The notes: a model not told the origin generated them from the letters alone. 64,000 nucleotides of DNA from Blastocladiella emersonii ATCC 22665 (GCA_025594325.1 JANHCV010000008.1:558001-622000); one strand, 5' to 3'. Counted from the first letter of the stretch, positions 13,681-31,458 are shown. Translations and numbers: made by a program.

Positions 13681-14723
13681 ATGAAGCTCAAGGACATCCC
13701 GCAGACCCCTCCCTTCGGCGATTGGGCAGCAACTGCGCGCGGCTTCGACGCGGTCACCGCCGACCTTGTTCAGCGCTTGCACCTAGTGGCGTTCGCCGGA
13801 GTCCTTGCGAGTTTTCCCTTTGCATTCTATACCCTTCACCACGTCTTCATCCGCCAACGTCGCCGCTTCTTTGCCCCACGGACTTCAGAGTCAGCTTTAA
13901 TCAAACCCATGCCCAATGAATGCTTCACCGCAGCAGTATTCGCTTCTGCGCCGGCGTTTATAATCTGGCAGCTGCTGTTGTATTTTGACGTGGGTCCGCC
14001 CGCCCTTCGACACTTTTTCCAAAACTTGCGCTATACGATGGCCGAGATCGGTAGCATTTTGTACCTTGTTGGGATCCAGTCGACGATTCCGCCAGGCGCT
14101 GCGACCCTCGCTAGCGGCTTTGCCCAGGACTCGTTGCCCTTATGGAAGCGACTCGTGCTTGCTGTTCCCGTCCCCCGGCCCAAAACCATGAACATCGTCA
14201 TGCTCTACTTTCTCATCATTCATGTAATCGCCACCAGTTCCATCACAATTGGTCTGGGGCTCGCCTCAACATGGGACGAAGCTCGAATCTGGCGCGCCGC
14301 CCTGTGGACCGTCTGGATCACCTTCACTGGATTCATCTCGCTCTTCCTTGCCCTCTTCGGCATCCAGCTGCTCGTGATCATTGATGCGAACGAGAGACAT
14401 CGCATGGCTACCGTGGTTCCGTCTCGGCCAGAGAGCTTCATGCTGGTCGAGAAGGAGAGCGCGTCCGCCAGCTCTGCACCCCCAAGCCCGGCAGCCATCA
14501 AGAAGTCGGCCTTCGTGTCGAGATCACTGGGTCTCGATCCTGCGACTCCATCCCGCTTGACACGGTCAAACCAAGGCCATTCCAGCAAAAGGTCTAGCCA
14601 CAGCGACGGAACAGACGCTCCCTCCTTGCGCCGAGCGCGCTCCATCAACCTCAAGCACTTGCGCAGCGTGATCCTGGCCGTCAGCGTTCTGTGCGGCAAC
14701 TACTCAATTATCAACGTACTTAC
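13681..14723 (+). pseudogene. 7TM paralog 2, 5' part, split by the viral insertion
   Basis: Aligns with paralogs 1 and 3 up to NYSIINVLT, where viral sequence begins. Confidence 0.9.
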
Positions 14724-15868
14724 TGTCGTATCCCTTAAGGGATACAACATGGGCTGACCCACTGCCACTCGGGCTGACCAATTGCTTACCCCGAGCGGTC
14801 GGCGACAGTCACTCGGGGTAACCACGTGAGACCCCGTTGCTTACCCCGGGTGGTTAATAAAATGTCGGATTCAAATGTTGTGTTCCCTTAGGGAACACGA
14901 CACGCGGACGGAGGCCAAAGGCCGAAGCAGGTAGGCGGGAGGGTGGGTGGAAGGGAGGGGCAAGCAGTCCAGGAGTGAGTCCCTGACCTGACCCCCGAGC
15001 CCGTCCCTAACCAACCCCTTGGGCTGACCATTGCTTACCCCGAGCGGTTGGCGGCGGCCGGCGAGCGCAGCGAGACGAAGAGCAGCGCAGCTGCGGCTAC
15101 CCACTGACAGAGTTCCCTGGTCTGGTCCCTGAGCACGGCTGCGAGTCGATCTGCGAGTTGATCTGCGAGACAAGTCCAAGAGCAGATCCCTGAGCCTGTC
15201 CCTGACCAACCACTCAGACTGACCATTGCTTACCCCGAGCGGTCGGCGGCGGCCGGCGAGCGCAGCGAGACGAAGAGCAGCGCAGCTGCGGCTACCCACT
15301 GACAGAGTTCCCTGGTCTGGTCCCTGAGCACGGCTGCGAGTCGATCTGCGAGTTGATCTGCGAGACAAGTCCGAGAGCAGATCCCTGAGCCCGTCCCTGA
15401 CCAACCACTCAGACTGACCATTGCTTACCCCGAGCGGTCGGCGGCGGCCTGCAAGCGCAGCGAGACGAAGAGCAGCGCAGCTGCGGCTACCCACTGACAG
15501 AGTTCCCTGGTCTGGTCCCTGAGCACAGCTGCAAGTCGATCTGTGAGCAGTCCCCGAGCCAGTCCCCGAGCCAGTCCCTGACCACCTGCCGCAAGCAGCT
15601 GCTATGAAGCCACTCACCGTAAAGGTCCCAAATTCATGGCAAAAAACAGCAGAGTATATATATACACTACCCTTTTTTGCCATGAATTTGGGACTTTCAA
15701 AGACAAGAGGTCAGGGTACGGGGGGAGGTCAAGGATGGGGGAGCGTCCTTAGCAGCATCAATGTATTGGGCAGGACAGGGGTCAAGGTACAAGGTCAAGG
15801 CAGGGGAGCGTCTTAGCAGGCAGCGTCTTAGCAGGCAGGAAGGCAGCGTGGCAGGTCATGGAGTGTCT
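14724..15868. repeat. Left terminal inverted repeat (1145 bp), containing 195-bp tandem units starting at 15024, 15219 and 15414
   Basis: Reverse complement of 30509-31458 with one extra 195-bp unit; it ends exactly at the helicase stop codon. Confidence 0.92.
15625..15694. other. Perfect 22-bp inverted repeat around a TATATATATA-containing loop; candidate replication origin (mirrored at 30683-30752)
   Basis: GTCCCAAATTCATGGCAAAAAA, a 26-nt spacer, then TTTTTTGCCATGAATTTGGGAC. Confidence 0.6.
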
Positions 15869-18800
15869 TAGAGCTCGTTGTTGTCCTCGTTGTTGTCCTC
15901 GTCCTCGTCCATCTCCAGGACAAACGGCGCCGAATTGGCTGGGGGTCGGTTCCAGGTCTTGTACATGACAAAGTACAGAATGTCGTCTGTCCACTTCAGG
16001 TTACTGTACTTCTTGCCGCGTACTGAGACCCGGGGTTCGTCCTTGTCTGGCACAGCAAGGCACTTGTTAAAGTAGGTGCCAAGAAGCCTGTTTAGGACTG
16101 TTGCTGTGTCACACTTGTAATACCCAAGCTTCTTGAAGTACTTGTGGATGTCCGCTTCAAACTTGGCGGGGATGGTGGCCTGGATGTTGAACTCCTCGGA
16201 CGTGCAGAGGTCCACGTCGTTGTGTTCCAGGAGCTTGTGCAGGACGTGGCCCTTGTCCTTGGTGTAAAAGTGCTGGATACGCTCCATGAAGCTCTCCGCG
16301 TTGTCGTCCCAGATGATCTTCATGTTGTCCATGCTCAGACCATTGAACTTGCGGATGAAGAAGGCCTTGCGGACAGAGAGGGAGATGGTCCAGTCCGGGT
16401 CCTTGATGGTACCTTTGCAGTAGGCACGCATGAGCTCCTTGGATGGTGGCTGGACGTTTGCCCATTCAAAAGACCAGCCCAACGTCATGACATCCTTAAT
16501 CTCGGGGTGCGCCTTGTAGTAGTACTCGGGGGAGTCGTCCATGACAATGTTGGCGACCTTGCAGAAGGCGTCAAAGACCTTGAGGCAGAAGGTCACAGCG
16601 GCCATCTCGTTCTCAAGATCTGTGTTCTTGACAATAGCCCGGTGAAGTTTGCCGACCGAGTCCAAGTCAATGACCTGTAACTTGTTCATGTACGCGCCGT
16701 GGCAACCATTGCTGATCATGAACACGATCTCGTTGTCATTGGGGTAGCGCACGCGGTAGATTGCCTGGAAGAAGTCGCGGGCAGGGACCCAGGACTCGTA
16801 GCGCGCGTACACCTTGTGGAAGACGTCTGGCTTTGAAAAGTTGACCCCCACAGTGATCTTGAGGTTGGCGATGACTATACGGACCGTATCGTCGCCCCAC
16901 ACAGAGTCAGGGTCAATGAGTTCCTTGTCCTCGTGGTTGGGGCGGTCGCCGTGGTAGAGCTTGATCTGCTTGCCAATCTTCCACGTCTCCTCGGCAAAGA
17001 CCCGCTCGAGGTACTCGCCAAAGGTCTGCACCGACCACTTGGTTGACTTCTTGCATGGTCGTGGGAGGAAGAGGTAGAGCTTCTTGTTGGCCTTGAGGTC
17101 GGCAATGATGTTGCTCTCCATGATGTCTTCAGCGGACTTCTCCTTGTCCTTGTCGTCGGTGATGAGGCTCATCTTGCGCGGCTCAAACTCCTTGCCAAGC
17201 GTGTTCGTGATCACCTTGATCTTACCATGGAGTATGGTCTTGATGTTGTGCTCAACAGTAAAGGAGTGGAGGACGTCCATGGTCAGGTTCGTGACAAACG
17301 CGTCCATGAAGATACCCTTGCTGCCCTTGTGCTCGCACAGCGTCTTGAAGGCCTTGAGGTTGGCCTCGAGGTTGTTGCGAATGGTGGTTGTGTGCAACTT
17401 GGCGTCCTGGAACATCTTGAGGACTGTCTTGGACTCGTCCACCACAACAATGTTGTAGGGCTCAGTCAAGTAGTGCAGCGAGCACGGCGAGACAATGAGT
17501 CGCTTGTGATCCCCCAGTGTCTTCTTGTCCTTGATGCTGCGGTAGTTGACAAAGCCAAGCTTCTGTTCGCGGGCTCGACCCTCGGTGTTGTGGGCCAGGG
17601 TGATGCGAGGTGTGATCCAGACCACTCGCGCGTCTGGGTACTTGGCAATGTAGTTGCAAACAGCGCCCGTCTTGTTGGAGCCCATGCCCGTGGCCAGCAC
17701 GTTGAACTTGGCCAGGGTAATGTTGTCGCAGGACAGGAACTGGTTGGGGCTGGTCACGTCCACTGGTACCTCAAGCGACTGCTCAAACTTGGCCATGGCC
17801 TTGGACTTGAACGCGGCTGGGAACCGCTTGTAGAAGATGGCCTTGACAAACGTGTCCAGCACCTGGTAGTTGTTGTTGCTGGCAATCTCGTTCCATCGGC
17901 CCCAGTACTTTTGCATGCGCTGAGCCGAGTTGTCCTGCTGCGACGTCCACGCCCAGAACTGGTCAAATGTGACCCCTTTGCGCATGGCCCATGTCATGAT
18001 CCGCCAGGTCACGTTGTTGTGGAATGCGTTCTCGGGGCTGATGGGGATGTTGTGGAGGATCTCGAGTGGCGTGGCGTTGTAGTAGAAGAAGTCGGGGTCG
18101 ATCTGCACGTCCTTGAACTCGGGGATGTCAAGGTCGTAGTCAAGGCAACCCGCGTGGCGCTTGGTCCGCGCTTCCTTGGCCTTGGCAGACACAAACTCTT
18201 CAAAGGACAGGTCCGAGACCGACACGCAGTTGGGGTCAAAGTCGCACTGGATCAAGTGCTTGGACAGGCAGTCCTTGTTGCCCGAGATCCACACACCGGG
18301 CGTCTTCTTGGGCTTGGACTGGTTGATGCACTTCATGAAGCGGTGCTTGCTGTACACGCTGGAGTCAAAGCCAAGCTTGACGTGGTCAGGGTGGCTGCAG
18401 AACAGCTTCAGGAACGGCATGTCCTTGAGCGTGACCGTGTAGTTGCTGATGACAATGTGCCACGACTTTTTGAGGTCCGTCTCGTAGCCGCAGACCTGGA
18501 GGTTGGCGCCGGGGAACTGGGTCAGGATGACCTTCTTGATGACGTCCAGGGTCACGTCCTTGCGGTTGCCTGGGCAGTCAATGTCAAAGTAGACCTTGGA
18601 CAGGCGATTGGGGTGGACCATCTCCTGGATGCAGCGGTTCTTGTCGAGGAGCCTGGCCAGGTCGGCTGTCTTGACCTTGGCAAAGTAGTGTGCTGCGATG
18701 GGCTGGCCATTTTTGTCAACGCCCTTGTCAACGAGGCGCTTGATGACCGTCTCGTCGTCTTGCAGCTCAGACAAGAGCGTGCGCTGAGGGCCCATGTCGC

Positions 18801-18879
18801 TGTCGCCACCATCCTTGCCATGGAACCACTTGAGACCAAAGGCGGTGCCATATTTACCGGGAACCTGCTTGCAAGGCAT
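15868..18879 (-). CDS. AEP primase + PriCT-2-like + SF2 origin-binding (UL9-like) helicase fusion, about 1003 aa
   Basis: AEP motifs KVYFDID, KKSWHIVI and FDSSVYSKHRFMKCINQSK; a W-rich PriCT-2-like block; helicase motifs TGMGSNKT, VVVDES, FMDAF, ITVGVNF and FQAIYRVR. Start placed at MPCKQ using the promoter motif. Confidence 0.8.
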   Translation of the reverse strand: MPCKQVPGKYGTAFGLKWFHGKDGGDSDMGPQRTLLSELQDDETVIKRLVDKGVDKNGQPIAAHYFAKVKTADLARLLDKNRCIQEMVHPNRLSKVYFDIDCPGNRKDVTLDVIKKVILTQFPGANLQVCGYETDLKKSWHIVISNYTVTLKDMPFLKLFCSHPDHVKLGFDSSVYSKHRFMKCINQSKPKKTPGVWISGNKDCLSKHLIQCDFDPNCVSVSDLSFEEFVSAKAKEARTKRHAGCLDYDLDIPEFKDVQIDPDFFYYNATPLEILHNIPISPENAFHNNVTWRIMTWAMRKGVTFDQFWAWTSQQDNSAQRMQKYWGRWNEIASNNNYQVLDTFVKAIFYKRFPAAFKSKAMAKFEQSLEVPVDVTSPNQFLSCDNITLAKFNVLATGMGSNKTGAVCNYIAKYPDARVVWITPRITLAHNTEGRAREQKLGFVNYRSIKDKKTLGDHKRLIVSPCSLHYLTEPYNIVVVDESKTVLKMFQDAKLHTTTIRNNLEANLKAFKTLCEHKGSKGIFMDAFVTNLTMDVLHSFTVEHNIKTILHGKIKVITNTLGKEFEPRKMSLITDDKDKEKSAEDIMESNIIADLKANKKLYLFLPRPCKKSTKWSVQTFGEYLERVFAEETWKIGKQIKLYHGDRPNHEDKELIDPDSVWGDDTVRIVIANLKITVGVNFSKPDVFHKVYARYESWVPARDFFQAIYRVRYPNDNEIVFMISNGCHGAYMNKLQVIDLDSVGKLHRAIVKNTDLENEMAAVTFCLKVFDAFCKVANIVMDDSPEYYYKAHPEIKDVMTLGWSFEWANVQPPSKELMRAYCKGTIKDPDWTISLSVRKAFFIRKFNGLSMDNMKIIWDDNAESFMERIQHFYTKDKGHVLHKLLEHNDVDLCTSEEFNIQATIPAKFEADIHKYFKKLGYYKCDTATVLNRLLGTYFNKCLAVPDKDEPRVSVRGKKYSNLKWTDDILYFVMYKTWNRPPANSAPFVLEMDEDEDNNEDNNEL

Positions 18880-19054
18880 GTTGTTATGATGAGGTAACAG
18901 AAATGGTGACAGGGCAGGTGCGTTTAAACGCGCAGGATTTAGCGCTAATGGCTGTGACCCGGGAGCCCTTGTTGGCATGGCCCATGACTTGCCACTGTCC
19001 TGACCCAGACCCGGCTGCCCTTGCGTGACCTGACCCTGACCCAGACACAACCTC

Positions 19055-19371
19055 CCCCATGAGCCCAACTTGGGAGCCAGTCGAGGCCGAGGTCACAATC
19101 CGCTCAAACCGTGACCTGGGACGCGACTGAGGGCGAAGAACCGGACCTCCACCCCCCATGACCCCGACTTGGGCGCCAGCAGAGGCCGAGGTCACAAACC
19201 CCCCATGAGCTCAACTTGGGAGCCAGTTGAGGCTGAGGTCACAATCCGCTCAAACCGTGACCTGGGACATGACTGAGGGCGAAGAACCGGACCTCCACCC
19301 CCCCCCCCCATGACCCCGACTTGGGCGCCAGCAGAGGCCGAGGTCACGAACCTCTCAAACCGTGACCTGGG
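19055..19371. repeat. Two copies of a ~146-150 bp unit with internal sub-repeats in the divergent helicase/recombinase intergenic region
   Basis: CCCCATGAGC(C/T)CAACTTGGGAGCCAG...CAAACCGTGACCTGGG recurs at about 19055 and 19201. Confidence 0.85.
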
Positions 19372-19496
19372 CCCTCCCACGGTCCATGACTTGCCACCAC
19401 CCTGACCCTGACCCAGGCCCAGCTACCCAGAAAAAAGAACGTTGCGTTCAAACGCACTTGAGCCCATGGAGCCTTTTTGTTGACAGTCAGTAAACC

Positions 19497-20624
19497 ATGT
19501 TGCTCGAGTCTCTTGCCTCTCAGGTCGCTGTTGCCCTCGCTCAGCATGTTGCCGCAGACGTGGTGCAGCAAGTCATGGACAAGCTCCAGCCCGTGTTTGG
19601 GTCAATCGACAAGCGCTTCAAGGACTTGGACGCGCGACTCAAGGCCATCAAGTCACACGACCCAGATCATGGCGCTGATCAGCAAGTCACTCCCATGGAA
19701 GTCGACACCCCCAAGGTCAAGTTTGCCGAGCTGACCGAGGATGCCATCAAGGCATGTGTCAACGCGCCTGTGGTGGACAAGAACAGGGAGCAGGCCGAGC
19801 TGGACGCCGACGACAAGGCCAAGACGGCTCGTGTACTCCTTGCCTTTGCCGCGTCAGGTCTGGACATCCAGGATGTCGAGGCTGTGTCCAAGGCCGTGGC
19901 CACCTACCGTGCGACCAAGGGGTCCAAGAACGTCCAGGGTCTGCAGGTCGAGACGCTCAAGGCCCTGGCCAAGTACTGCACCTGGAACGGGTGGACCGAA
20001 CTCGGGGCCAAGTACACAGAGGCCAAGAAGCAGGACGCTGCCAACTTCCGCAACGCGCGCAAGGAACTCGAGTCTGGTGCGCTCCCAAGCCGTGACGCCA
20101 TTTGCGCCGCTATTGTTGATGCAAAGGGCTCGGGCACGGGGCTCCTGCGTCTGTACCTCCAAGTTGTGAGTGCGGTGCGCTCTGACCCTGCGTTCCTGAC
20201 CACGAAGCCAACCACTGGGTACCCGTACTACGACCCAGAGACCCAGATTCTGGCTGGCGATGTCATTGTCAAGACAGAGGGCTGTGGCTACAACTTCTTG
20301 CACACAGTTAGTGAGCCCAAGGTCGCCGCCGCTCTCAAGCGTATCCTCGCCCAGCGTCTCGCCAAAGGTCATGACTTTGTCTTCAACAACTACACCCTCA
20401 AGGAGCTCAAGGACACCACGCTCCGCAAGAGGGTTAGCAGCACCTGGTGTACGTCAATTAGTCGGGCTGCAAAGACGGTCGGCTTTGAGGATGGCGGCGT
20501 GGCAGTGATCCGCCGTATCTCCACCAGTGAGAACTTTGCTGCGCAGCAAGCTATTGCCAAACGCGCGCACGAGATGGGTCACAGCGTCCCCGTTGCGCTG
20601 ACCTACTACATGACGCCTCAGTAA
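19497..20624 (+). CDS. Tyrosine recombinase-like protein (375 aa)
   Basis: Catalytic-type residues in order: R (VSAVRSD), K (VKT), xxRR (VAVIRR) and AHEMGHS-x6-YY at the C-terminus. Confidence 0.75.
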   Translation: MLLESLASQVAVALAQHVAADVVQQVMDKLQPVFGSIDKRFKDLDARLKAIKSHDPDHGADQQVTPMEVDTPKVKFAELTEDAIKACVNAPVVDKNREQAELDADDKAKTARVLLAFAASGLDIQDVEAVSKAVATYRATKGSKNVQGLQVETLKALAKYCTWNGWTELGAKYTEAKKQDAANFRNARKELESGALPSRDAICAAIVDAKGSGTGLLRLYLQVVSAVRSDPAFLTTKPTTGYPYYDPETQILAGDVIVKTEGCGYNFLHTVSEPKVAAALKRILAQRLAKGHDFVFNNYTLKELKDTTLRKRVSSTWCTSISRAAKTVGFEDGGVAVIRRISTSENFAAQQAIAKRAHEMGHSVPVALTYYMTPQ

Positions 20625-20652
20625 TCCTTTTGTCTCCGCCTTTGTTGATACA

Positions 20653-21765
20653 ATGTATGCCCACAAAGAGCCGCTCACAGACGCACAGCAAGCATTCCTG
20701 ACAGACTTGTACTACAAGCGCGGCCACGTAGGTGTTGGCATCCGTCAGCTCTTTGACATTGTGTCCAGAGAGAACACAGGGAAGCACATCTACTGCGCCC
20801 AGCTTGAGAGATGGCTCGGCGAACAGTCCGTGTGGCAGCAGTACAAGCGCGCACCTCAGAAGCGCCGAGACATTCGAAGCATCAACTCAACGAGCCCCGG
20901 TCGCAACTTCCAGCTTGACCTCATTGACATGGGCGAAAACGGTACGTACAAGGGCTTCCGTTACATTCTTACGTGTGTCGACCTGGCGAGCCGCCGCGTC
21001 TACCTCCAACCCATCAAGACCAAGGACAAGACGCGGGAAGCATGGTCCAGCGTGGTCGCCAAGCACAGCCTTGCACCTGCCACAATCCAGACGGACAATG
21101 GGACCGAGTTCTTTGGCATAGAGGCCGGGACTGAGGCCAAGCACATCAAGGGCAAGGCAGGAGTGCCATATGGTCAAGGTGTCGTTGAGCATATGAACGG
21201 GACCATCCGCCGGATGCTCACACCGTGGCTGTCCATCCCGGGCAACAACGACTGGCCCAAGCACCTCGAGACCATTGAATCTGTGATCAACAGCAGCAAG
21301 TCGAGGGCCGCGGGCAGGGCGCCCAACGAGTTCTATGACATGCCCCGCGAAACGGCCAAGGAAGAGCTCAAGGCAATCCGAGCTGCCAAAGGCAAGCCCG
21401 AGGGCGACCCTCTGAGCGCGTTGCTGGAGGTAGGGACCCAGGTCCGAGTCCGCGAGCCGTACAAGACTGCCATGGAGGCCAAGGGGAAGCCAGTCTGGTC
21501 GCCAACCGTGAGCCAGGTCCAGGTTGTGCGCAAGGGGTTGGGCGTGAGCAATCCAAGCTACAAGGTCCAAGGCCTCAAGGGCTTCTACCCTCGAAGCGAC
21601 GTCCAGCCAGTCACAGCGACCCAGGACCCGCCAACAAGGCAGCGCGTAGGTCCAAGTCTTCCAAGGCTCCCTGCTGCGCGCACCCCAGTCACGCCAAGGG
21701 AGCCCTCGACCCGGGTCAGGCGCGTCCCAGTCCGAGTCCAAGAAAAGTGGGACCGCGGGCTTTAG
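20653..21765 (+). CDS. Retroviral-like (rve, DDE) integrase of Polinton type (370 aa)
   Basis: FQLDLIDM, YILTCVD..SR, IQTDNGTEF and GVVEHMNGTIR (D-D-E triad), plus a C-terminal VGTQVRV...WS...YKV SH3-like region. Confidence 0.92.
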   Translation: MYAHKEPLTDAQQAFLTDLYYKRGHVGVGIRQLFDIVSRENTGKHIYCAQLERWLGEQSVWQQYKRAPQKRRDIRSINSTSPGRNFQLDLIDMGENGTYKGFRYILTCVDLASRRVYLQPIKTKDKTREAWSSVVAKHSLAPATIQTDNGTEFFGIEAGTEAKHIKGKAGVPYGQGVVEHMNGTIRRMLTPWLSIPGNNDWPKHLETIESVINSSKSRAAGRAPNEFYDMPRETAKEELKAIRAAKGKPEGDPLSALLEVGTQVRVREPYKTAMEAKGKPVWSPTVSQVQVVRKGLGVSNPSYKVQGLKGFYPRSDVQPVTATQDPPTRQRVGPSLPRLPAARTPVTPREPSTRVRRVPVRVQEKWDRGL

Positions 21766-23705
21766 AGCAGGGTCCAGTGGCTTTGAATGATGACCTGGCA
21801 GTCGTTGGCAACTGCGACCGACGGGATCCAGATGAAAGAGTAGTTCTTGGCCGCGTCAAGGTACTCAATGCTCAAGAACTGAAGGAACTGGACATTGCCT
21901 TCAGCGCGGCACCCGGTGACAAGCAACACTGCAATCATGTCCGTCATATTGTACAGCGCAAAGTTCACAGTGTGGGCTCCAGGGAGCGCGCCGTTTGCGT
22001 AGTAGCCCTTTGCATGGACGAGGTAGTAGCCACTGACAGGGGGTTTGACGCATCCATTGATCACAGACGTGAACGCGCCTGCCGTGGACTGGAACGCAAA
22101 GGTGGCCGGGCCCGTTGATGCTGTGCCGCCAATGATCTTGCCGCCCGTGGTCACTCTGTTTGTAGAGCGGTGCTTGGCCTGAGCGACGTACCGGGTCGTG
22201 CCAGACCGCGAGTCAACATACGCCTTGTTTGCTGCGTCGGTGCCTGCCACTGGAGCGAGGTCAAGGGTGAGCTGCCCTGTGAAGCGACCAGTGCCATTGA
22301 CGCGGAGCCTTTCTGTGCCAAGCGTCGCCGAGCCCACGACCACATTGCCACCACCTGCCACAAGGGAGACCCCGCCCGTGGTCGCAGACGCAATCTCAAT
22401 GTTACCCGCCGCTGTGCATGCCAGGTTGCTTCGCAGTACGCCTGCCTGCTTAAAGTCGACGTACGTCAATGTATTGGCAGCCGAGTCAAAGACAAGGTTT
22501 GCACTTGTGGCATTCCGGACCAGGACGTTGGGCACAGTCAGTTGCTTGCCAACTCCAAGACCACCAGCAATGGTGACTGCTCCAGTGCTTGATGTCAAAC
22601 TGTCCGTCGTATTTGCAAAGGCAAAGGCAGCGCCGAGTCCAAGGGTGGACTGGGGGAGCGTGCCAATGACCGAGGCTGCGCTCACGGCCGTGACCTTGGC
22701 TGAGACGTCGGGGAGTCGTGCCAGGTCAATGGTCCCTGCAAGCTTGGCCGAGTCAATGCCAGATGCCAGCTTGGCGCTGGTCAGGGTCCCGTCGGCGATG
22801 CGGGCAGGGTCAAGGATCCCAGTGAGCTTGACTGCCGACACGTCCGCGACCTTGGCGTCCATGACTGCGCCTGCTGCCAGGTGGGCTGTTCCAATGGACC
22901 CAACGTTGAGCTTGCCCCCATCAATGCCAGTTGCCAGCTTGGCGTTGGTCACGGCCGCGTCTGCCAGGACCAGGGAGCCGACCGTGCCCGCTGCCAGCTT
23001 GGACCCGTCGATGCCAGCTGCCACCTTGGCGTTGGATACGGCACCGTCTGCCAGGGCTCCCATCCCAATAGTCCCTGCAACGAGCTTGGACCCAGACACG
23101 GACGCGACCTTGGCATCTGTGACTGCCAGGTCGATGAGAGCCGCTGTGCCAACCGTGCCTGCCACAAGCTTGGACCCGGACATGGACGCGACCTTGGCAT
23201 CAGTCACTGAGCCGTCTGCCAGGACCGAGGTCCCGACCGTGCCTGCCACAAGCTTGGACCCGGACACAGACGCAACCTTGGCATCAGTCACTGAGCCGTC
23301 TGCCAGGACCGAGGTCCCAACGGCTGGGAGGTTGGACGCACTGAGCACGCCCACAAGCTTGGACGCAGACACAGTGTCCAGCTGAGCATTGACGAGCTTG
23401 CCTGTGACCTGCCCTGCTGTAATCGTGGCGACCTTGTCAGCCGTGACGCTGGCCGGGAGCAGCTGTGCCGTGCCAACTGACTTGACATAGAGCCCTGCTG
23501 CGCCCACGCCAAGGGTCTGGTTGTCGACCTTGGCCGAGACAGTGGTCCCTGAGACTGCCACGCCAGGGCCAGCAACAGGTGCGCCAACCGTGGCATACAC
23601 GGCACTGATGGCCGCGTCAACGTAGGCCTTGGACACGTCCGGGACCCCCGTGGTAGACACGGTCGGAGACGCAGTACTTGAGACGTTAAAGATATTCTTG
23701 ACCAT
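21762..23705 (-). CDS. Putative fibre/spike protein with 25-aa repeats (647 aa)
   Basis: Tandem LADGSVTDAKVASVSGSKLVAGTVGT-type repeats (75-bp period), a TSSTGAVTIAGGLGVGKQL fibre-like motif and a beta-rich C-terminal head (KPPVSGYYLV). ATG at 23705 is preceded by the viral promoter motif. Confidence 0.7.
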   Translation of the reverse strand: MVKNIFNVSSTASPTVSTTGVPDVSKAYVDAAISAVYATVGAPVAGPGVAVSGTTVSAKVDNQTLGVGAAGLYVKSVGTAQLLPASVTADKVATITAGQVTGKLVNAQLDTVSASKLVGVLSASNLPAVGTSVLADGSVTDAKVASVSGSKLVAGTVGTSVLADGSVTDAKVASMSGSKLVAGTVGTAALIDLAVTDAKVASVSGSKLVAGTIGMGALADGAVSNAKVAAGIDGSKLAAGTVGSLVLADAAVTNAKLATGIDGGKLNVGSIGTAHLAAGAVMDAKVADVSAVKLTGILDPARIADGTLTSAKLASGIDSAKLAGTIDLARLPDVSAKVTAVSAASVIGTLPQSTLGLGAAFAFANTTDSLTSSTGAVTIAGGLGVGKQLTVPNVLVRNATSANLVFDSAANTLTYVDFKQAGVLRSNLACTAAGNIEIASATTGGVSLVAGGGNVVVGSATLGTERLRVNGTGRFTGQLTLDLAPVAGTDAANKAYVDSRSGTTRYVAQAKHRSTNRVTTGGKIIGGTASTGPATFAFQSTAGAFTSVINGCVKPPVSGYYLVHAKGYYANGALPGAHTVNFALYNMTDMIAVLLVTGCRAEGNVQFLQFLSIEYLDAAKNYSFIWIPSVAVANDCQVIIQSHWTLL

Positions 23706-23725
23706 GTTTAACCTTAAGCAACAGA

Positions 23726-23977
23726 ATGATTTCCAGCGACCATGACCTGAGCCTGGATGAGTGGCGGGAGCACCTCGCCGGGACCATGCCCGTGCCAAGC
23801 AGCTGGTACAGCAAGAGCGACGAGGACAAGGCCAAGTGGCTACAGAAGCGCGACTGCAAGGCCAACCGGTACACGCACGTCGACAACGAGGCAGCGCGGG
23901 CAGAGCGGGTTAAGATCCGGATCTACAAGGCACTCAACGCCAAGCGCCGGGACCAGGGGGCAAATAGCACCGTCTGA
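23726..23977 (+). CDS. Small charged viral hypothetical protein (83 aa)
   Basis: Viral-like codon usage, divergent from the fibre gene, with TTCTTG-N8-TAAC at 23695-23712 upstream. Confidence 0.5.
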   Translation: MISSDHDLSLDEWREHLAGTMPVPSSWYSKSDEDKAKWLQKRDCKANRYTHVDNEAARAERVKIRIYKALNAKRRDQGANSTV

Positions 23978-24054
23978 GGGACAAAAGGCACCTGCCACGG
24001 GGAAAAAGGTACCAACAGGGGGACGTTTTATTTTTGGTCCATACAGTAACCATC

Positions 24055-25770
24055 ATGGGCCGAAGAACAGTACCAGATCTACTTGCAAGAGTGACCAAGG
24101 CAACCGGCGGGCGCATCATGGCCGAGCGCCTTGCAGGGCAGAAGATCAAGGCAACCATTGACGGCTGCGAGTACACGTTCCCCAATGCCAAAGAGCTCCT
24201 CGACGTCTGGGTGCCTTACATCCTTGCCTTTGACTACAAGGTGACGCCCGAGAGCTATGCCAACGACTTTGGCTGCAAACGAGGCGACTCGCTGTTCTAC
24301 CTCAAGCACCAGGACAGCGTCACTGGGTACGAGGTCAAGGACCTCCAGGAGCACGTCCAAGACACGCTTAAAGCGTGGGAAGAGCACCAGGCAACGGGCA
24401 AGGTCACTTGAGTCCCAGTCGCTCCACCAGCGGCAAGCCCCAGACCAGAGGCCCCCGAGTCAGCCACGGACAGCGACAGGGGCAGCAGCGAAGAGGAGCG
24501 CGACGAGCTGGCAGAAGAGATCTCGCGAGCCCTGGACGTCATTGACGAGGACGCTGTACCGGACCACTTGCTCCCCGTGCCTGTCCGGCCAGTCATGCCC
24601 GAGCAGTACCCGGTCGAGGCCGGCGACTATGTTGGTCAAGACATTGACGAGTACGGCGCCATGATCCCCGGCCAGTACCTGATCCAGAATGACAATGACG
24701 GCGGCAACGACCCGCCCCCAAGGCTTGACGACGGCACCCGCGACCTCGTGGTCATGCCACCAAGCTACGGCCCGGACGTGGCACAGCGGCAAGGCGTGTA
24801 CAACGAGGGTCACGTCCACCCGGCCATGGACGAGGCACGCATGATCAAGGGCTCCAAGGACTTGCAGGTCTACAACCCCGAGCGGGCGCTGACAACCACG
24901 GACGACATGGAGGTCGATGTTGTCCAGAACTTTCAACAGTTTAACCAGTTCGTGTACAACAGCTACACGCAGCAGAACACGCAGAACGTCAACATGCGGC
25001 AGTTCATCACCCAGTACGAGAACAACTACTACGAGCAGAACGTGGACATGCGGCAGCAGATCCTGGTCCAGTACAACAATGACCCGAACGTCATGGCCGC
25101 GCTCGAGCTCATTGCCTTGCAGTTTGCCGGGTCCCAGGTCATGCAGTACCAGGCGTACCAGGCGCTCATCGAGCAGTCGGCGGCCGCTCAGGGACTGGCC
25201 ATGGACGCATTTGCCAACCTCGCGTCCGGGATTGTGGACACGCTCCGAGCCAAACGCAACAACTTTGCCCGCCAGATTGACGCTGGCAACCGCGCGCTTG
25301 TGTCTGAGATTGCCACGGGCATGTCCTCTGCGCTCAGCAACCAGCAGGTGCTCATGAACCAGCTCGCAAGCGGCGTCCAGGGCGCGATCCAAGGGCAGAC
25401 CCAGAGCAACGAGGCCATGACCAAGACGCTCCAAGACCTTGGGTCCAAGCTGGACACGATCCCTGCACCCCAAGTCATTGTCCAGCCTGCCAACACAAGC
25501 GGCCTTGAGGCCATGATCAGGGAGCTGGCCGCGCAAAACAATTCCGGCGGTAGTTCTAAGAAGACCGACATGCTCCTCGAACAGATCCTCAAGCAACTGG
25601 GCTACAAGAAGCCGACCGACGCGAAGCTGTTCACAGACAAGCGGGCAGCGGGTAGCGGGCTGACAGCGCCCAAGATCCAGCGTCACCAGAAGATCCCTGA
25701 GCGGCCCGTCAAGCAGGTCCGCGAGACCCCAAGGCGCAGCGGCATTGTGCTTGACCTCGGCTGGGACTGA
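24055..25770 (+). pseudogene. Viral hypothetical protein (~571 codons) with a single in-frame TGA at 24409-24411
   Basis: ORFs 24034-24411 and 24568-25770 are in the same frame. The 52 intervening codons are open and protein-like (VPVAPP...SSEEERDELAEEISRALDVIDED). Confidence 0.7.
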
Positions 25771-25779
25771 CGCCCTTTT

Positions 25780-25799
25780 TTGTTGGCAGTCTTTAAATG
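25780..25799 (+). promoter_or_regulatory. Example of the viral bipartite promoter TTGTTG-N8-TAAATG (ATPase gene)
   Basis: The same spacing recurs at 19477, 26610, 27873, 28166, 28939, 23724(-), 29491(-) and 18900(-). Confidence 0.75.
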
Positions 25800-26594
25800 T
25801 ACGACATTGTTGCCATTGACAACGGCTTTACGCGCAACGACGACGGCGAGCCGCTGCCGATCCCCAAGCACCCGTTCACCATGAACGTCATTGGCGCCAA
25901 GGGTCAGGGCAAGTCGACGCTGATCGCAAACATGGTCTGCTTCCCGCACTTTTACAAGGGCCAGTTCGACAACATCTGGGTCTTTAACCCGACGTTCCAC
26001 GCCGACGACAAGTACGAGTACATTGCCAGTCAACCGATCCTGCGACCGCCCAAGAAGGAGCGCAACGTGCTGGACCCCCAGGAGCGCGACCCGGACCGGC
26101 TCAAGATCAAGCCAGGGTGCATTGTCACGGACCCCGAGCAGTTCATCCCGACCCTGCTCAAGATGCGCCAGGACCTGACCAAGACATTCGAAGAGTCTGG
26201 CAAGAAGGCGCTCCAGGACCAGCTGCTGATCATTGACGACGTGCTCGGGCTCAAGCTGCTGAGCCACAGAACGCTGACCAACTTTCTGTGCAACTCGCGG
26301 CACTTGAAGATCAGCTGCATCATTGGCGTCCAGCGGTGGTGTGCCCTGCCCAAGACTCTGCGCATCAATTGCAGCTACAGCGTTGTCTACCCAATCTATG
26401 ACAAGACCGAGGTCCAGACGCTGCACAAGGAGATTGGGTCGCAGTTCGACCTCAAGGAGTTTGAGGCCATCATTGAACAGCTCTTTGACACGCGTACTGG
26501 CAACACGAAGCGACGCTTCCTGGGCGTCAACAACCAGAACCCGCCCAAGTACCGGCTCGTAGACAGCTTCAGCGAGTGGATCGTGAAGCAGTAG
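25797..26594 (+). CDS. A32/FtsK-like genome packaging ATPase
   Basis: Walker A GAKGQGKS, Walker B LLIIDD, and the SRHLKISCIIGVQ...LPKTLRIN signature of the A32 family. Confidence 0.93.
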   Translation: MYDIVAIDNGFTRNDDGEPLPIPKHPFTMNVIGAKGQGKSTLIANMVCFPHFYKGQFDNIWVFNPTFHADDKYEYIASQPILRPPKKERNVLDPQERDPDRLKIKPGCIVTDPEQFIPTLLKMRQDLTKTFEESGKKALQDQLLIIDDVLGLKLLSHRTLTNFLCNSRHLKISCIIGVQRWCALPKTLRINCSYSVVYPIYDKTEVQTLHKEIGSQFDLKEFEAIIEQLFDTRTGNTKRRFLGVNNQNPPKYRLVDSFSEWIVKQ

Positions 26595-26634
26595 ACTCTT
26601 GACTTTTTTTTGTTGCCGAGTCCTAAACTAAACC

Positions 26635-27855
26635 ATGTCCAGTACCAACGCCCAGTTCTCGCAGGTCCTGTCCAAGACTCTCCCTCCCAAGATGTTGTTC
26701 AACCTGCCCAAGGAGTCCGTCTATGCCGAGCGCCAGACCGTCCAGTTCACGGCTCAGGGCGGCCCTGAGTTTGCTCCTGGCAACAGCATCAGCGTCCTGC
26801 TCCCGCCGCGCGATGACATGATGGACACGCACTGTACTTTCCTGCAGTTCTCGGCCAAGACCACGGACGCCAACGTTGCTTTCTGCAATGGTATCTTCAG
26901 CGTCATTGACCGTGTCCGCATCTACAGCGCGTCCGGTGCCCTACTCGAAGAGCTCCCGTACTACAACCTGCGTCAGCGCATCGAGGCCGACGTGACGGTC
27001 CCCCAGTACCTCAAGGACTTGTGTCTCGGCGTGGCACAGGGCTACTTTGCGTCCGGCGCAGACAAGTTCGCTGTCTCATCTGGGCTGCACCGGTACATGC
27101 TGCCCATCAAGTCGGCCCTGCTGGCAAACCAGAAGCACCTCCCAATGAAGTACACGGGCGGCATCCGCGTCGAGTTCACCCTTGCACCTGGCAGTGACGC
27201 CTGCGTGGTCAAGAACAATGCCATCCCGGGCTACACAGTCAAGGACGTCTGCATCGTCTCGGACCTGATCAAGCTCAACGACCAGCAGATCGCGGTCATG
27301 GACGCGGCCTTCAAGAAGCAGGGCCTCAAGCTCTTTGGCACGACCTACAACCACCACTTCCTGAACTACTCGGTGCCCAACTCGACGCTCAACATCTCGG
27401 ACCGCTCGGCCTCACAGAAAGACATCCTGCTGTCGTTCCGCAACAATGCCGTGCTCAATGACAATGCCAAGGACTCGTTCCTTTGTGCCAAGACCATTAC
27501 ATCGTACCAGTTCAGCGTGGCCGGCCGACTCTTCCCTCAGCGACCCATCCGCTGTGACGACTACGCGTCTGAGGCGTTCGTTGAGCTGACCAATGCCTTC
27601 CATGGCCACGTCATTGGCGCTGGCCTCACAGTTGACAAGTTCAACGCGCCGGCCAAGGGTACCTTTGTCGTTGGCCGTGACCTCAAGTCGAGTCGCACCG
27701 TGGTCAGCGGCGACAAGTCTTGCAAGAGCCAGGCCGTGGACATGCAGGTGATCCTGACTTCAAGCGTGGCCCCGAACCAGCGCGTGGACGCCTTCATTGG
27801 CATCGACGTGGTCTACGAGTTCCTGCCAACCGGCGAGATCAACATCTACAAGTAA
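26635..27855 (+). CDS. Major capsid protein, double jelly-roll, PLV type (406 aa)
   Basis: Size, beta-strand pattern, motifs SVIDRVRIYSASGALLEELPYYN, HLPMKYTGGIRVEFTL, SYQFSVAGRLFP and a C-terminal SG, and position next to the ATPase and penton genes. Confidence 0.85.
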   Translation: MSSTNAQFSQVLSKTLPPKMLFNLPKESVYAERQTVQFTAQGGPEFAPGNSISVLLPPRDDMMDTHCTFLQFSAKTTDANVAFCNGIFSVIDRVRIYSASGALLEELPYYNLRQRIEADVTVPQYLKDLCLGVAQGYFASGADKFAVSSGLHRYMLPIKSALLANQKHLPMKYTGGIRVEFTLAPGSDACVVKNNAIPGYTVKDVCIVSDLIKLNDQQIAVMDAAFKKQGLKLFGTTYNHHFLNYSVPNSTLNISDRSASQKDILLSFRNNAVLNDNAKDSFLCAKTITSYQFSVAGRLFPQRPIRCDDYASEAFVELTNAFHGHVIGAGLTVDKFNAPAKGTFVVGRDLKSSRTVVSGDKSCKSQAVDMQVILTSSVAPNQRVDAFIGIDVVYEFLPTGEINIYK

Positions 27856-27897
27856 CAGCCCTGTCCTTTCTTTTCTTGCGTAGAGTTAAACCCCGCC

Positions 27898-28164
27898 ATG
27901 ATCTTCCGTAACCTCTGGACCAACTTTAGCAATGTGCTCGGCCAGGTCGGGTCCTTTGTCAACAAACACATGCCGACCGTCCTCAAAGGCGTCAAGACCG
28001 TGTCCAAGTTCTTTGAGCAGTCGCACAACCCCGCCGTGAGCTCCATTGCGCAGATGGTGTCCAAGGGCGCCAACCTCGCCCAAGACATTCACACCTGGTA
28101 CAACCGACCAACGAGCGAGATCTTTGAGGCAGACGCTGACGACACGGGGACAGCTGTACAATAA
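27898..28164 (+). CDS. Small amphipathic-helix protein, candidate core/membrane-penetration protein (88 aa)
   Basis: N-terminus FRNLWTNFSNVLGQVGSFVNK; it lies between the MCP and mCP genes and has its own promoter motif. Confidence 0.65.
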   Translation: MIFRNLWTNFSNVLGQVGSFVNKHMPTVLKGVKTVSKFFEQSHNPAVSSIAQMVSKGANLAQDIHTWYNRPTSEIFEADADDTGTAVQ

Positions 28165-28182
28165 ATTGTTGTCTTTGTTTAA

Positions 28183-28926
28183 ATGTCCGAGTACAAGACG
28201 CTGACCATCTGCAGCCGCGACCTCAAGAATGGCATCCTGTACCTGCCACGACCCCTGTCCGTGCGCGGCGTCAAGGTCAACTCGGCGTACCTCTGCAACA
28301 GCTGGCACACGGTCAACTCCAAGGCCAACAAAGTGTACCTGACCCAGAGCCGTGGCGCGCTGACGTTCCCGGGTACCATCACTGTCCCTGACAGCAACTA
28401 CACAGTCAAGACGTTCACGGCCACGCTCAAGAGCCTGCTCAACAACGCGCCGTCGTCGTACCTCTGGCAGGGCTCCTGGGACGTCCAGGTCGACTCGACT
28501 ACCCAGAAGATGCGCCTGGCCAACGACACGGTTGACTTTACAATTGGAACAGGGACGGCGTTGCTGAACGTCCACATGGGCTTTGTTGGAGCGTATGGCT
28601 ACAGCAAGGTCCAGTACGGGTCGGCGCTGGTCAACATCTCGCCCATCAACCTGCTTCACGTCTACTTGCGCAACCTTGGCACCCGGCTCGCGGACAACAT
28701 GTTCTTGGCGTACCCACAAGACAACGGCGTACTTTGTAGCATCCACGTCACGCAACCCTTTGGCAGCTGGTTCGAGCATCGACCACACATGGGCGACTAC
28801 TTTCGCTTTGACGCGCAGGGACAGGCCCAGCAGATTGACTGTATTGACATTGACGTGGTAGACAAGAACCTGCGCTCTGTCGACTTTCTTGGCCAACCCT
28901 TCTACGTCGAGCTCGCGTTCATCTGA
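28183..28926 (+). CDS. Minor capsid (penton) protein, single jelly-roll (247 aa)
   Basis: ITVPDSNYT and C-terminal IDIDVVDKNLRSVDFLGQPFYVELAF, typical of PLV/Polinton minor capsid proteins. Confidence 0.85.
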   Translation: MSEYKTLTICSRDLKNGILYLPRPLSVRGVKVNSAYLCNSWHTVNSKANKVYLTQSRGALTFPGTITVPDSNYTVKTFTATLKSLLNNAPSSYLWQGSWDVQVDSTTQKMRLANDTVDFTIGTGTALLNVHMGFVGAYGYSKVQYGSALVNISPINLLHVYLRNLGTRLADNMFLAYPQDNGVLCSIHVTQPFGSWFEHRPHMGDYFRFDAQGQAQQIDCIDIDVVDKNLRSVDFLGQPFYVELAFI

Positions 28927-28957
28927 CGTTGACTTTAATTGTTGTTCTACTGTAAAC

Positions 28958-29059
28958 ATGATCCTCGAGACGCTCCTTGTTGCCACCAACGCCCTGATCC
29001 TTGTAGCCAACCTGGCCATTGTCGGGTACACAAGCAAAGTATTCCGCGCCGTAGAGTAA
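28958..29059 (+). CDS. 33-aa single-pass hydrophobic peptide (not in the ORF track)
   Basis: MILETLLVATNALILVANLAIVGYTSKVFRAVE, directly preceded by TTGTTG-N8-TAAAC. Confidence 0.6.
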   Translation: MILETLLVATNALILVANLAIVGYTSKVFRAVE

Positions 29060-29319
29060 GCAACAACATGTGCTTTAAATTCTTTCTGCGAAGGCATAGT
29101 AAGACACAGGACAATGAATACTGGCTCTACTGCATCAACGCCCCGCGCACCTTCCACAAGCATCCCTTGGACTGGCCGTCCGGGCCCCCAGACAACAGCC
29201 AACTACACAGCCATCCGCAACGTGGCCCTGCCAGGTGTCAAGGTTGTGTACACTGTCTGCTTTGAATAGATCCTTCAAGTTAACTTGGTTAGCTACCTTG
29301 AAGCCTTTACTGGTCGCTC

Positions 29320-29472
29320 TCAGACTACCCGCCGGTATGTGTACTTGTGCCCACAGCATGGGTACACGACTTGGACCCACAGCAGCTCATTGTCATGGAC
29401 CCAGCTGGGAGCATCATAGTGATCGCATGGCGGCTTGGGCAGGGGGACGATCTCTTTGATACAGCCTCGCAT
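29320..29472 (-). CDS. 50-aa Cys/His-rich viral peptide
   Basis: MRGCIKEIVPLPKPPCDHYDAPSWVHDNELLWVQVVYPCCGHKYTYRRVV, with TTGTTG-N8-TAAC one base before the ATG. Confidence 0.5.
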   Translation of the reverse strand: MRGCIKEIVPLPKPPCDHYDAPSWVHDNELLWVQVVYPCCGHKYTYRRVV

Positions 29473-29703
29473 AGTTACAGTAGTCCAACAAAGTTTAAAT
29501 TGACAAACGCATTCAACGCACTTGGCATGACGTAGCAACGGGACACACTACGACATTGACATAAAGTAGAAATAAGGGGTGCTCCGCCCTGTCCAGGAAG
29601 CGTTGGCCAAGCGCCTCCCAGACTGCTCCATCCTGGAGGTCTCCTTTCATGGTGGCCAGCCACTAATCAGAGTTCCAACATGGAGCAGGCATCATTGCTA
29701 ATA

Positions 29704-29811
29704 CTCATTGAACCACACAGCGCCAACACACCCAAAAGACTCATCAAACCACACAGCGCCAACACACCCAAAAGACTCATCGAACCACACAGCGCCAACA
29801 CACCCAAAAAG
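29704..29811. repeat. 36-bp tandem repeat, three copies
   Basis: CTCAT(TG/CA/CG)AACCACACAGCGCCAACACACCCAAAAGA repeated head-to-tail without spacers. Confidence 0.9.
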
Positions 29812-30179
29812 AGAGAGATAGGAATGGATCAAAGAGCACTGCATGAGTAGCTAATCCAAGCAGCGCCCACAATCCAGACCAAGACAGGGGTTAACCAAGT
29901 CATTGCCGTGCACATACAGATGACTCAGCAGATCCCAAGCCAAAGGAATAGGGAAGTGGCCACCCGCAATGTCGGCCATGCACCCATACCAGAAGCCTAC
30001 TGTGAGCGTTGGGCGCATTGCAAAGATGGCCTATACAATCAGAGTAGGGCTTGAGGCAGTGAATCTGTGACATGGCTTTCATGGTGAGTGGCAAAGAGCA
30101 GCTCTCAGGGCAGGGGGAGTGGGGGGTTCTTATAGGGCCAGGGTTAGCGCTAAATCCTCAGGCACAGGGCCCTGATCTG

Positions 30180-30508
30180 GCACCCCCAACGTGACCCCCC
30201 GCCTGACCCCCCGCCTGACCCCCCGCCTGACCCCCCGCCTGACCCCCCGCGTGACCCCCCGCCTGACCCCAGACCTGGCACCCCAGACCCTCCATGACCC
30301 GGCACCCCCGACCTGGCACCCCCGACCTGGCACCCCAGACCTGGCACCCTGACCTGGCACCCCAGACCCTCCATGACCCGGCACCCCCGACCTGGCACCC
30401 CAGACCCGGCACCCCCAACCTGGCACCCCAGACCCGGCACCCCAGACCTGGCACCCTGACCTGGCACCCCAGACCCTCCATGACCCGGCACCCCAGACCT
30501 GGCACCCC
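30180..30508. repeat. C-rich short tandem repeats abutting the right TIR
   Basis: CCTGACCCCCCG 12-mers followed by GACCTGGCACCCCA-type 13-14-mers. Confidence 0.85.
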
Positions 30509-31458
30509 AGACACTCCATGACCTGCCACGCTGCCTTCCTGCCTGCTAAGACGCTGCCTGCTAAGACGCTCCCCTGCCTTGACCTTGTACCTTGACCCCT
30601 GTCCTGCCCAATACATTGATGCTGCTAAGGACGCTCCCCCATCCTTGACCTCCCCCCGTACCCTGACCTCTTGTCTTTGAAAGTCCCAAATTCATGGCAA
30701 AAAAGGGTAGTGTATATATATACTCTGCTGTTTTTTGCCATGAATTTGGGACCTTTACGGTGAGTGGCTTCATAGCAGCTGCTTGCGGCAGGTGGTCAGG
30801 GACTGGCTCGGGGACTGGCTCGGGGACTGCTCACAGATCGACTTGCAGCTGTGCTCAGGGACCAGACCAGGGAACTCTGTCAGTGGGTAGCCGCAGCTGC
30901 GCTGCTCTTCGTCTCGCTGCGCTTGCAGGCCGCCGCCGACCGCTCGGGGTAAGCAATGGTCAGTCTGAGTGGTTGGTCAGGGACGGGCTCAGGGATCTGC
31001 TCTTGGACTTGTCTCGCAGATCAACTCGCAGATCGACTCGCAGCCGTGCTCAGGGACCAGACCAGGGAACTCTGTCAGTGGGTAGCCGCAGCTGCGCTGC
31101 TCTTCGTCTCGCTGCGCTCGCCGGCCGCCGCCAACCGCTCGGGGTAAGCAATGGTCAGCCCAAGGGGTTGGTTAGGGACGGGCTCGGGGGTCAGGTCAGG
31201 GACTCACTCCTGGACTGCTTGCCCCTCCCTTCCACCCACCCTCCCGCCTACCTGCTTCGGCCTTCGGCCTCCGTCCGCGTGTCGTGTTCCCTAAGGGAAC
31301 ACAACATTTGAATCCGACATTTTATTAACCACCCGGGGTAAGCAACGGGGTCTCACGTGGTTACCCCGAGTGACTGTCGCCGACCGCTCGGGGTAAGCAA
31401 TTGGTCAGCCCGAGTGGCAGTGGGTCAGCCCATGTCGTATCCCTTAAGGGATACGACA
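30509..31458. repeat. Right terminal inverted repeat (950 bp)
   Basis: Reverse complement of the left TIR minus one 195-bp unit; ends in the perfect palindrome TGTCGTATCCCTTAAGGGATACGACA. Confidence 0.92.

Follow-up and report, generated by a model that had tools for sequence, protein, structure and literature searches.

A probable full-length polinton-like virus genome integrated in the zoosporic fungus Blastocladiella emersonii

Results

An integrated element with defined ends

We analyzed a stretch of 64,000 nucleotides, hereafter called the window, from Blastocladiella emersonii ATCC 22665 (GCA_025594325.1, JANHCV010000008.1:558001-622000), in which positions 14724-31458 are occupied by an element of 16,735 bp. 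We read this element, with a probability of about 0.85, as a polinton-like virus (PLV; Preplasmiviricota) of a lineage that is resident in fungi of the Blastocladiomycota, integrated here with its full-length genome. The element starts with TG and ends with CA, and it is framed by two copies of a 5-bp target-site duplication, CTTAC, at 14719-14723 and 31459-31463. Its terminal inverted repeats extend over 14724-15868 (1,145 bp) on the left and 30509-31458 (950 bp) on the right and are 98-99% complementary, the difference in length amounting to one additional copy of an internal 195-bp tandem unit in the left arm, which holds 2.8 copies of it. A preceding interpretation made from the DNA without database searches (the sequence-only reading) had described TG...CA ends, a 5-bp duplication and inverted repeats of about 1 kb, and had taken the whole for a complete, integrated element of PLV type; this description agrees with our results. 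All ten open reading frames (ORFs) accepted for the window copy are open.

The boundaries could be examined from the side of the host, as the insertion splits a plus-strand ORF into an upstream piece (13513-14723) and a downstream piece (31464-31710), of which intact paralogues lie within the window at 8843-10117 and 32127-33428. The two pieces were aligned to the paralogues separately and were never joined. The left flank piece aligned with residues 1-346 and 10-354 of the two paralogues, and the piece directly following the second CTTAC with residues 348-400 and 357-413, respectively. Since the flanking pieces match consecutive paralogue residues, the host sequence is continuous across the element once one copy of the duplication is discounted. 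The predicted boundaries are thus independently validated by the paralogues, which stand in for an empty allele. Furthermore, the outermost 26 nt of each end are palindromic, perfectly so on the right (31433-31458) and with one mismatch on the left (14724-14749), and as single-stranded DNA the palindromes are predicted to form hairpins of -10.8 to -12.1 kcal/mol, a range covering the window ends and those of a second copy on contig 13 (L011:2915-2940 and L013:14605-14630). In the contig-13 subfamily two mirrored positions are changed relative to the window and the palindrome is still perfect. Such compensatory changes between subfamilies suggest that the palindrome has a function, candidate roles being a symmetric integrase site or a hairpin end.

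Capsid and packaging genes

The 406-aa product of the plus-strand gene at 26635-27855 gave no match in sequence searches against Pfam, PHROG and PDB, and its identification comes from a predicted structure. AlphaFold2 with a six-sequence alignment only reached a predicted local distance difference test (pLDDT) score of 40.6, so a 56-sequence alignment from a full HMMER search was used instead and yielded a model with pLDDT 90.2 and a predicted template modelling (pTM) score of 0.86. Foldseek matched this model in the PDB to the capsid proteins of PBCV-1 (Vp54), Singapore grouper iridovirus (SGIV), EhV-201 and faustovirus and to vaccinia D13, with E values down to 7.5e-18 and template modelling (TM) scores of 0.6-0.72, at a sequence identity of 9-13%. 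In BFVD the best match was an unnamed viral protein (E 2e-22; TM up to 0.76 across the Foldseek searches), followed by many giant-virus major capsid proteins (MCPs), while adomavirus, adintovirus and virophage capsids ranked lower, the virophage capsids appearing only at ranks 39 and 48. The model and its matches, at E values of about 1e-17 to 1e-22, identify the predicted protein as a double jelly-roll MCP, as the sequence-only reading had assigned it.

The full HMMER search defined a large, metagenomic MCP family of 1,262 cluster representatives (347 below 1e-10), while a word-based protein search with either the MCP or the 375-aa protein described below returned almost exclusively B. emersonii paralogues. 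Scanning with the Pfam NCLDV capsid families found no match for the window MCP and none in ten longer relatives, and a weak Capsid_N match (0.0062) was noticed in one of the 56 family members; at the level of sequence the family is distinct from the giant-virus capsid family. A profile of the family compared with solved structures found no virophage capsid, and on this basis, together with the low Foldseek ranks, the MCP is not of virophage type. The profile did reach a multi-copy cluster of endogenous copies in Tetraselmis striata (E 3.7e-21), which we take to be linked to the Tetraselmis/TVS PLV group, and with non-fungal relatives the MCP shares about 42% identity at most.

Immediately upstream, at 25797-26594 on the plus strand, lies a gene for a 265-aa genome-packaging ATPase of A32/FtsK-HerA type, which matched Pfam Pox_A32 above the cut-off (1.6e-12) and shares conserved Walker A and B motifs with its relatives; the A32 assignment made earlier is therefore upheld. 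Downstream of the MCP gene two further plus-strand genes follow, one of 88 aa (27898-28164) and one of 247 aa (28183-28926). The sequence-only reading had seen here a single in-frame stop interrupting one gene. The two ORFs are likewise separate genes in a B. emersonii copy of 78% identity, and also in three distant relatives (separate 88-aa homologues occur in L007 and in L003, L004 and L005, respectively), and each protein aligns over its full length with its own homologues. The stop is the natural end of a conserved 88-aa gene and not damage, and the window copy carries no breaks. The 247-aa protein is 34-38% identical to the gene following the MCP in three relatives, and its family profile matches an ORF in an element of the chytrid Phlyctochytrium (2.7e-8); by position, size and conservation it is a candidate penton (minor capsid) protein.

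The minus-strand gene at 21762-23705 encodes a fibre-like protein; counted from the first ATG it has 647 aa, and its 28-aa repeats correspond to an 84-bp tandem repeat. It matched Pfam Phage_Tail_Tip (7.1e-9) and PHROG tail-fibre families, in keeping with the fibre proposed earlier, and it is open in all copies.

Integrase, primase-helicase and a candidate recombinase

The plus-strand gene at 20653-21765 encodes a 370-aa integrase of the rve (DDE) family. It matched NCBIfam IS481 at 2.9e-16, its residues D89, D148 and E179 are invariant with relatives, and it shares 30-33% identity with the integrases encoded on metagenomic contigs L003 and L004, for which the precomputed annotation lists Pfam rve; the Allomyces orthologue itself matched Pfam rve above the cut-off (1.2e-9). 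The rve integrase of the sequence-only reading is thereby sustained, and the same holds for its primase-helicase, which we find encoded on the minus strand at 15868-18879 (1,003 aa from the first ATG). This protein matched Pfam Herpes_ori_bp (5.8e-11) and NCBIfam CyRepA1 (3.4e-19), and a profile built from 27 helicase sequences matched the herpesvirus origin-binding protein UL9 over the helicase core (8.6e-26) and human PrimPol over the N-terminal domain (4.5e-4), where the primase DxD and sxH motifs are conserved. These matches support a predicted fusion of an archaeo-eukaryotic, PrimPol-like primase with a central UL9-like superfamily 2 helicase. The Herpes_ori_bp match came from a 1,066-aa reading of the helicase ORF; the alignment scan, which used the 1,003-aa reading, does not list it.

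Between these two genes, at 19497-20624 on the plus strand, lies the gene for a 375-aa protein. Compared with the catalytic set R-K-(H)-R-H/W-Y of tyrosine recombinases, it has a K, a second R, an H and a Y that do not vary among the B. emersonii subfamilies and Allomyces, and a first R that is kept in three of four sequences. The candidate catalytic residues are spaced by about 31, 70, 22 and 9 residues (counted by eye), which recalls the arrangement in XerD. On this motif evidence the protein is fairly probably a tyrosine recombinase.

Remaining genes and coding calls

Because the genome is GC-rich, many long antisense ORFs occur, and GC content at third codon positions (GC3) was used as a filter to pick out real genes, which left the ten ORFs accepted here. 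Two of them precede the ATPase gene on the plus strand. The smaller, at 24055-24411 (118 aa from the first ATG; GC3 0.72), is open in all copies, and relatives have a small gene in the equivalent position. The larger, at 24595-25770 (GC3 0.83), encodes a 391-aa Q/N-rich protein for which family searches in Pfam and other profile sets gave no match, and it fills the slot held by proteins of 632-691 aa in the relatives. We considered whether it might be a frameshifted larger gene and dropped this idea, as the region shows no similarity to those 632-691-aa proteins; the layout of a small and a large gene upstream of the ATPase agrees with that of the relatives. From 28927 to 30508 the element is non-coding and repeat-rich, with tandem arrays of 36-, 12-, 14-, 79- and 107-bp units. 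No tRNA or Rfam family was found in the window.

The public gene models differ from these calls. One model merges the 88-aa and 247-aa genes (27898-28926) into a 303-aa product and another merges both ORFs upstream of the ATPase (23726-25770) into a 619-aa product; the fibre model (21762-23798), presumably by way of predicted introns, yields 372 aa against the open frame of 647 aa, and the integrase (20653-21765) has no public model. These models, taken from L002 (the window locus) and L006, look artefactual, with viral genes fused or missed, and the element thus exposes annotation errors in the public gene set.

Ahead of most of the element's genes we noticed a T-tract followed by a box resembling GTAA(A/C) or GTTAAAC, no more than 25 nt from the start codon and typically 5-15 nt before the ATG. 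When the 25-30 nt 5' of the ten start codons in the window were scanned, TTTTG was present in five of ten (0.14 expected) and TAAAC in four of ten (0.09 expected), enrichments whose P values are optimistic because the box was defined after the data had been seen. A similar box is found in the B. emersonii copy on contig 12 (L007) and in Allomyces (L014), and, as TGTAA, in the metagenomic relatives (L003-L005). It may represent a promoter of viral type.

A multi-copy family under selection

At least seven contigs of the assembly carry gene models for the MCP, 83-97% identical and including 406-aa ones, and eleven carry gene models of the family. At a distance of 132 kb lies another copy (L001), which matches the window element at 98.9% identity over 10,160 ungapped nt and encodes the same MCP without change. 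This supports the earlier proposal that the integration is recent; the integration does look evolutionarily recent from this comparison. No helicase arm was found within the 21-kb locus around that copy. A second full-length copy, on contig 13 (L011 plus L013), measures 18,670 bp and has termini of the same kind and a 5-bp duplication of its own, CAGCT. In the contig-12 and contig-13 copies the helicase is 94-96% identical to that of the window while the remainder is about 78% identical, which points to an exchange of modules between subfamilies. In the contig-13 copy about 3.3 kb of unrelated sequence takes the place of the N-terminal part of the 375-aa gene; this extra segment (L011:6736-10013), lying between the helicase and the 375-aa gene, holds two candidate ORFs without Pfam match. 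Truncated and rearranged copies are also present in B. emersonii.

Ratios of nonsynonymous to synonymous substitution rates (dN/dS) were calculated between the window and the 78%-identical contig-12 copy. They were 0.12 for the MCP, 0.15 for the ATPase, 0.09 for the 88-aa gene and 0.15 for the 247-aa gene (0.09-0.15 for the capsid block), 0.24 for the fibre and 0.41 for the 375-aa protein, and these estimates indicate that the predicted virion genes, at 0.09-0.24, are under purifying selection. The capsid block is open in the window and in five other loci. Stops were noticed in the integrase, one each in L001 and L012 and two in L007, which has a further one in the 391-aa gene; the contig-13 copy has none. 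An open capsid block beside a decaying integrase fits a lineage selected for particle production, of which some copies may no longer integrate by themselves. GC3 of the MCP falls from 0.83 in the window to 0.55 in Allomyces and further to 0.46-0.48 in the metagenomic relatives, and the GC content of the element equals that of its flanks. Composition has thus shifted toward the host, and the lineage has long been adapting to this GC-rich genome.

Relatives in other organisms and earlier reports

A syntenic relative was found in Allomyces macrogynus, where locus L014 (GG745338.1, record 846037-868208) has the gene order of the window element, with an MCP 58% identical to that of the window, an ATPase, an rve integrase, a 375-aa-like ORF and a primase-helicase; the ends of that element are masked by assembly gaps, and its MCP apparently has no protein annotation. 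Helicase homologues with 46-50% identity occur in A. arbusculus, A. javanicus and A. macrogynus. On two Allomyces contigs, L008 and L009, the helicase homologue stands alone. In the chytrid Phlyctochytrium arcticum the helicase is 28% identical, and the locus (L010, JAHLKI010000045.1) holds this related primase-helicase, an rve integrase, an ATPase and a 247-aa-like ORF. The same locus has two methyltransferase genes and a fibre-like gene, and the MCP lies outside the part examined. Metagenomic contigs L003 and L004 and the 2.9-kb L005 share with the element the block of ATPase, MCP, small gene and gene of about 250 aa. L003 and L004, which are contigs of 10-15 kb, additionally carry rve, and since they lack terminal repeats they are probably incomplete.

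Bellas and Sommaruga (bioRxiv 10.1101/2019.12.13.875310) described a PLV integrated within large contigs of the chytrid Spizellomyces punctatus, which anchors a group of 27 members, about half of them with a chitinase, and reported "novel MCP members" in Allomyces macrogynus. A 2026 survey of 7,103 eukaryotic assemblies found double-stranded DNA viral regions in 153 fungal assemblies. The B. emersonii genome paper (PMC9730499) does not mention the element, and our literature search found no paper joining Blastocladiella with polintons and no description of the B. emersonii family. The sequence-only reading had considered a zoosporic-fungal host noteworthy. The host is indeed a zoosporic fungus, B. 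emersonii of the Blastocladiomycota, but this kind of host is not new after the 2019 reports from S. punctatus and Allomyces, which make the novelty of a PLV in a zoosporic fungus moderate. What is new here is that an intact, multi-copy and selected B. emersonii family has been characterized, with its synteny with Allomyces and the structure of its ends.

Surroundings of the element

The paralogous ORFs at 8843-10117, 13513-14723 plus 31464-31710 (the insertion target) and 32127-33428 have about 60% amino-acid identity and no Pfam match, and could be a host gene family or another mobile element. A long terminal repeat (LTR) retrotransposon at 36700-42023 has a minus-strand pol gene (37186-39825) with reverse transcriptase-RNase H and rve domains, and its 216-bp LTRs share 97.7% identity; this family is also represented by a solo LTR at 13154-13369, 1.4 kb upstream of the PLV. 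The region 48000-52000 has 74-75% GC and long overlapping ORFs on both strands without Pfam matches.

Discussion

Classification and points that weigh against it

As a working definition, a PLV has an MCP, a minor capsid protein and an ATPase with variable additional genes in a genome of 10-40 kb, and protein-primed polymerase B (pPolB) and rve do not occur together in it. The element has a double jelly-roll MCP, an A32 ATPase, a length of 16,735 bp and an rve integrase without pPolB. For pPolB no match was obtained and no unassigned ORF is of polymerase size, the primase-helicase being the only product above 700 aa. For a maturation protease no ORF gave a match even at permissive thresholds, at which a very divergent protease could conceivably still escape. 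The lack of both genes agrees with the sequence-only reading, and by the working definitions it places the element among PLVs and not among Polintons or virophages. The gene set which that reading had called unusual, rve and primase-helicase without pPolB, accords with the PLV definition and is not unusual, and the inducibility it had raised as possible is conjectural.

Certain observations weigh against our reading of the element as an integrated PLV. The evidence for it is drawn from genome sequence. The Pfam rve match of the window integrase itself (2.7e-6) lies under the curated cut-off, and stops in the integrase in three of the five other loci imply that some of the spread may be non-autonomous. 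Searches of Pfam, PHROGs, NCBIfam and PDB profiles with the 375-aa protein, including a profile with its 24%-identical Allomyces homologue, were blank, so that the tyrosine recombinase named by the sequence-only reading is unconfirmed, with the conserved motif residues in its favour. The penton named there likewise lacks confirmation, as the 247-aa protein matched no Pfam, PHROG or PDB profile and is supported by its conserved place after the MCP. A scan of the IMG/VR viral contig set based on the ATPase found no relatives with the patterns tried.

Alternative explanations

Two alternatives concern the origin of the element. A true Polinton or Maverick, that is, a self-synthesizing transposon with protein-primed polymerase and protease, would share with the element the rve integrase, the inverted repeats, a short target duplication and the capsid module. 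It would also have pPolB and an adenovirus-type cysteine protease, yet the sole ORF above 700 aa is the primase-helicase and no ORF matched a protease, and the duplication is 5 bp in two insertions as against the 6 bp made by Polintons. For the window copy this origin is refuted by gene content, and we hold it to be extremely improbable. Equally remote is an endogenous fragment of a giant virus (Nucleocytoviricota), to which the Foldseek matches with the capsids of PBCV-1, iridovirus, EhV and faustovirus might point. These matches have only 9-13% identity, the window MCP has no Pfam NCLDV capsid match and just one of the 56 family members a weak Capsid_N match, and no giant-virus core gene (PolB, RNA polymerase, VLTF3 and others) occurs among the ORFs of the element. 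Such a fragment would moreover hardly be a self-contained unit of 16.7 kb, delimited by ends and a duplication of its own, or have as relatives 10-15-kb contigs with rve.

Two further explanations concern the way of life of the element. It could now be a transposon-like genomic parasite copied by its integrase, with capsid genes that are relics and make no particles, as its multiple copies, some of them truncated and rearranged, and the transposon-rich neighbourhood with the LTR retrotransposon and solo LTR might suggest. But it is the integrase that decays, while the capsid genes are open in six of six loci with dN/dS of 0.09-0.15, and the exchange of the helicase module (94-96% against 78% for the rest) is what is expected of co-replicating genomes; we therefore think this explanation unlikely. 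Somewhat less so, though still doubtful, is a virophage-like or defence provirus that would stay silent until a giant virus infects the fungus and then use the transcription and replication machinery of that virus. A lifestyle of this kind can coexist with classification as a PLV. In favour of it, the element encodes neither a DNA nor an RNA polymerase, a short upstream signal is common to nearly all its genes and recurs in Allomyces and the metagenomic relatives, and giant viruses persist in Allomyces, where some of their contigs bear PLV-like integrases. On the other side, no giant-virus genes were found in the window or the examined loci, the MCP is not of virophage type, no ORF matched a cysteine protease, the choice of the upstream box followed inspection of the data, and Blastocladiella is absent from the text of the giant-virus survey.

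Proposed mechanism and significance

Returning to the integrated PLV as the preferred reading, inverted repeats of about 1 kb, TG...CA tips and a 5-bp duplication are the footprint of a DDE (rve) integrase, and the element encodes one with an intact triad. We propose that a linear double-stranded genome with inverted-repeat ends would be inserted into nuclear DNA by this integrase. Once expressed, the primase-helicase would start replication with a polymerase from the host or a helper virus, a borrowed enzyme being proposed because the element encodes none. The ATPase would then pack the DNA into icosahedral capsids built of MCP trimers, with the 247-aa protein presumably at the vertices and the fibre mediating attachment. 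Across diverged copies the capsid genes are under purifying selection, which suggests that the lineage spreads as particles and not solely by copying within the genome.

Double-stranded DNA viruses are rare in fungi, and giant viruses of zoosporic fungi have been established only recently. Those of the Blastocladiomycota (Mycodnaviridae) are now documented, which makes a virophage-like role worth testing. It is conceivable, at a rather low likelihood, that the PLV lineage of Blastocladiella and Allomyces is the small-virus partner of zoosporic-fungal giant viruses, that is, a resident provirus with a shared promoter read by the giant virus, acting as parasite or as host defence; if true, a three-way system of this kind would be without precedent in the fungal kingdom. 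B. emersonii serves as a laboratory model and its genome is contiguous, and its PLV family together with the Allomyces relative offers a concrete system in which PLV-based or virophage-like interactions in fungi can be addressed by sequence, expression and distribution data.

Comparison with known systems

Polintons or Mavericks (Orthopolintovirales) resemble the element in being integrated and in having rve, inverted repeats, a double jelly-roll MCP, a penton (here a candidate) and an ATPase, and differ from it in having pPolB and a protease and in the length of the duplication, which is 5 bp here. Mavirus, the integrating virophage of Cafeteria, is likewise integrated in multiple copies; it has rve and long inverted repeats together with a short target duplication, and its capsid module includes an A32-type ATPase, all of which it shares with the element. 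It also carries pPolB, a cysteine protease and a virophage-type MCP, for which no counterparts were found here. The S. punctatus group is likewise a case of PLVs integrated in a zoosporic fungus, with the difference that about half of its members have a chitinase gene and the element has none. In the Spizellomycetales species P. arcticum an element is found that has the helicase, rve, ATPase and 247-aa-like gene in common with ours. Most closely, PLVs (Aquintoviricetes) correspond to the element in a size of 10-40 kb, terminal inverted repeats, a double jelly-roll MCP of about 400 aa, an A32 ATPase, a minor capsid gene adjoining that of the MCP (a candidate here), and a primase-helicase instead of pPolB with no protease, whereas the B. 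emersonii element is distinguished from them by its fungal host and by a UL9-like superfamily 2 helicase that appears fused to a PrimPol domain.

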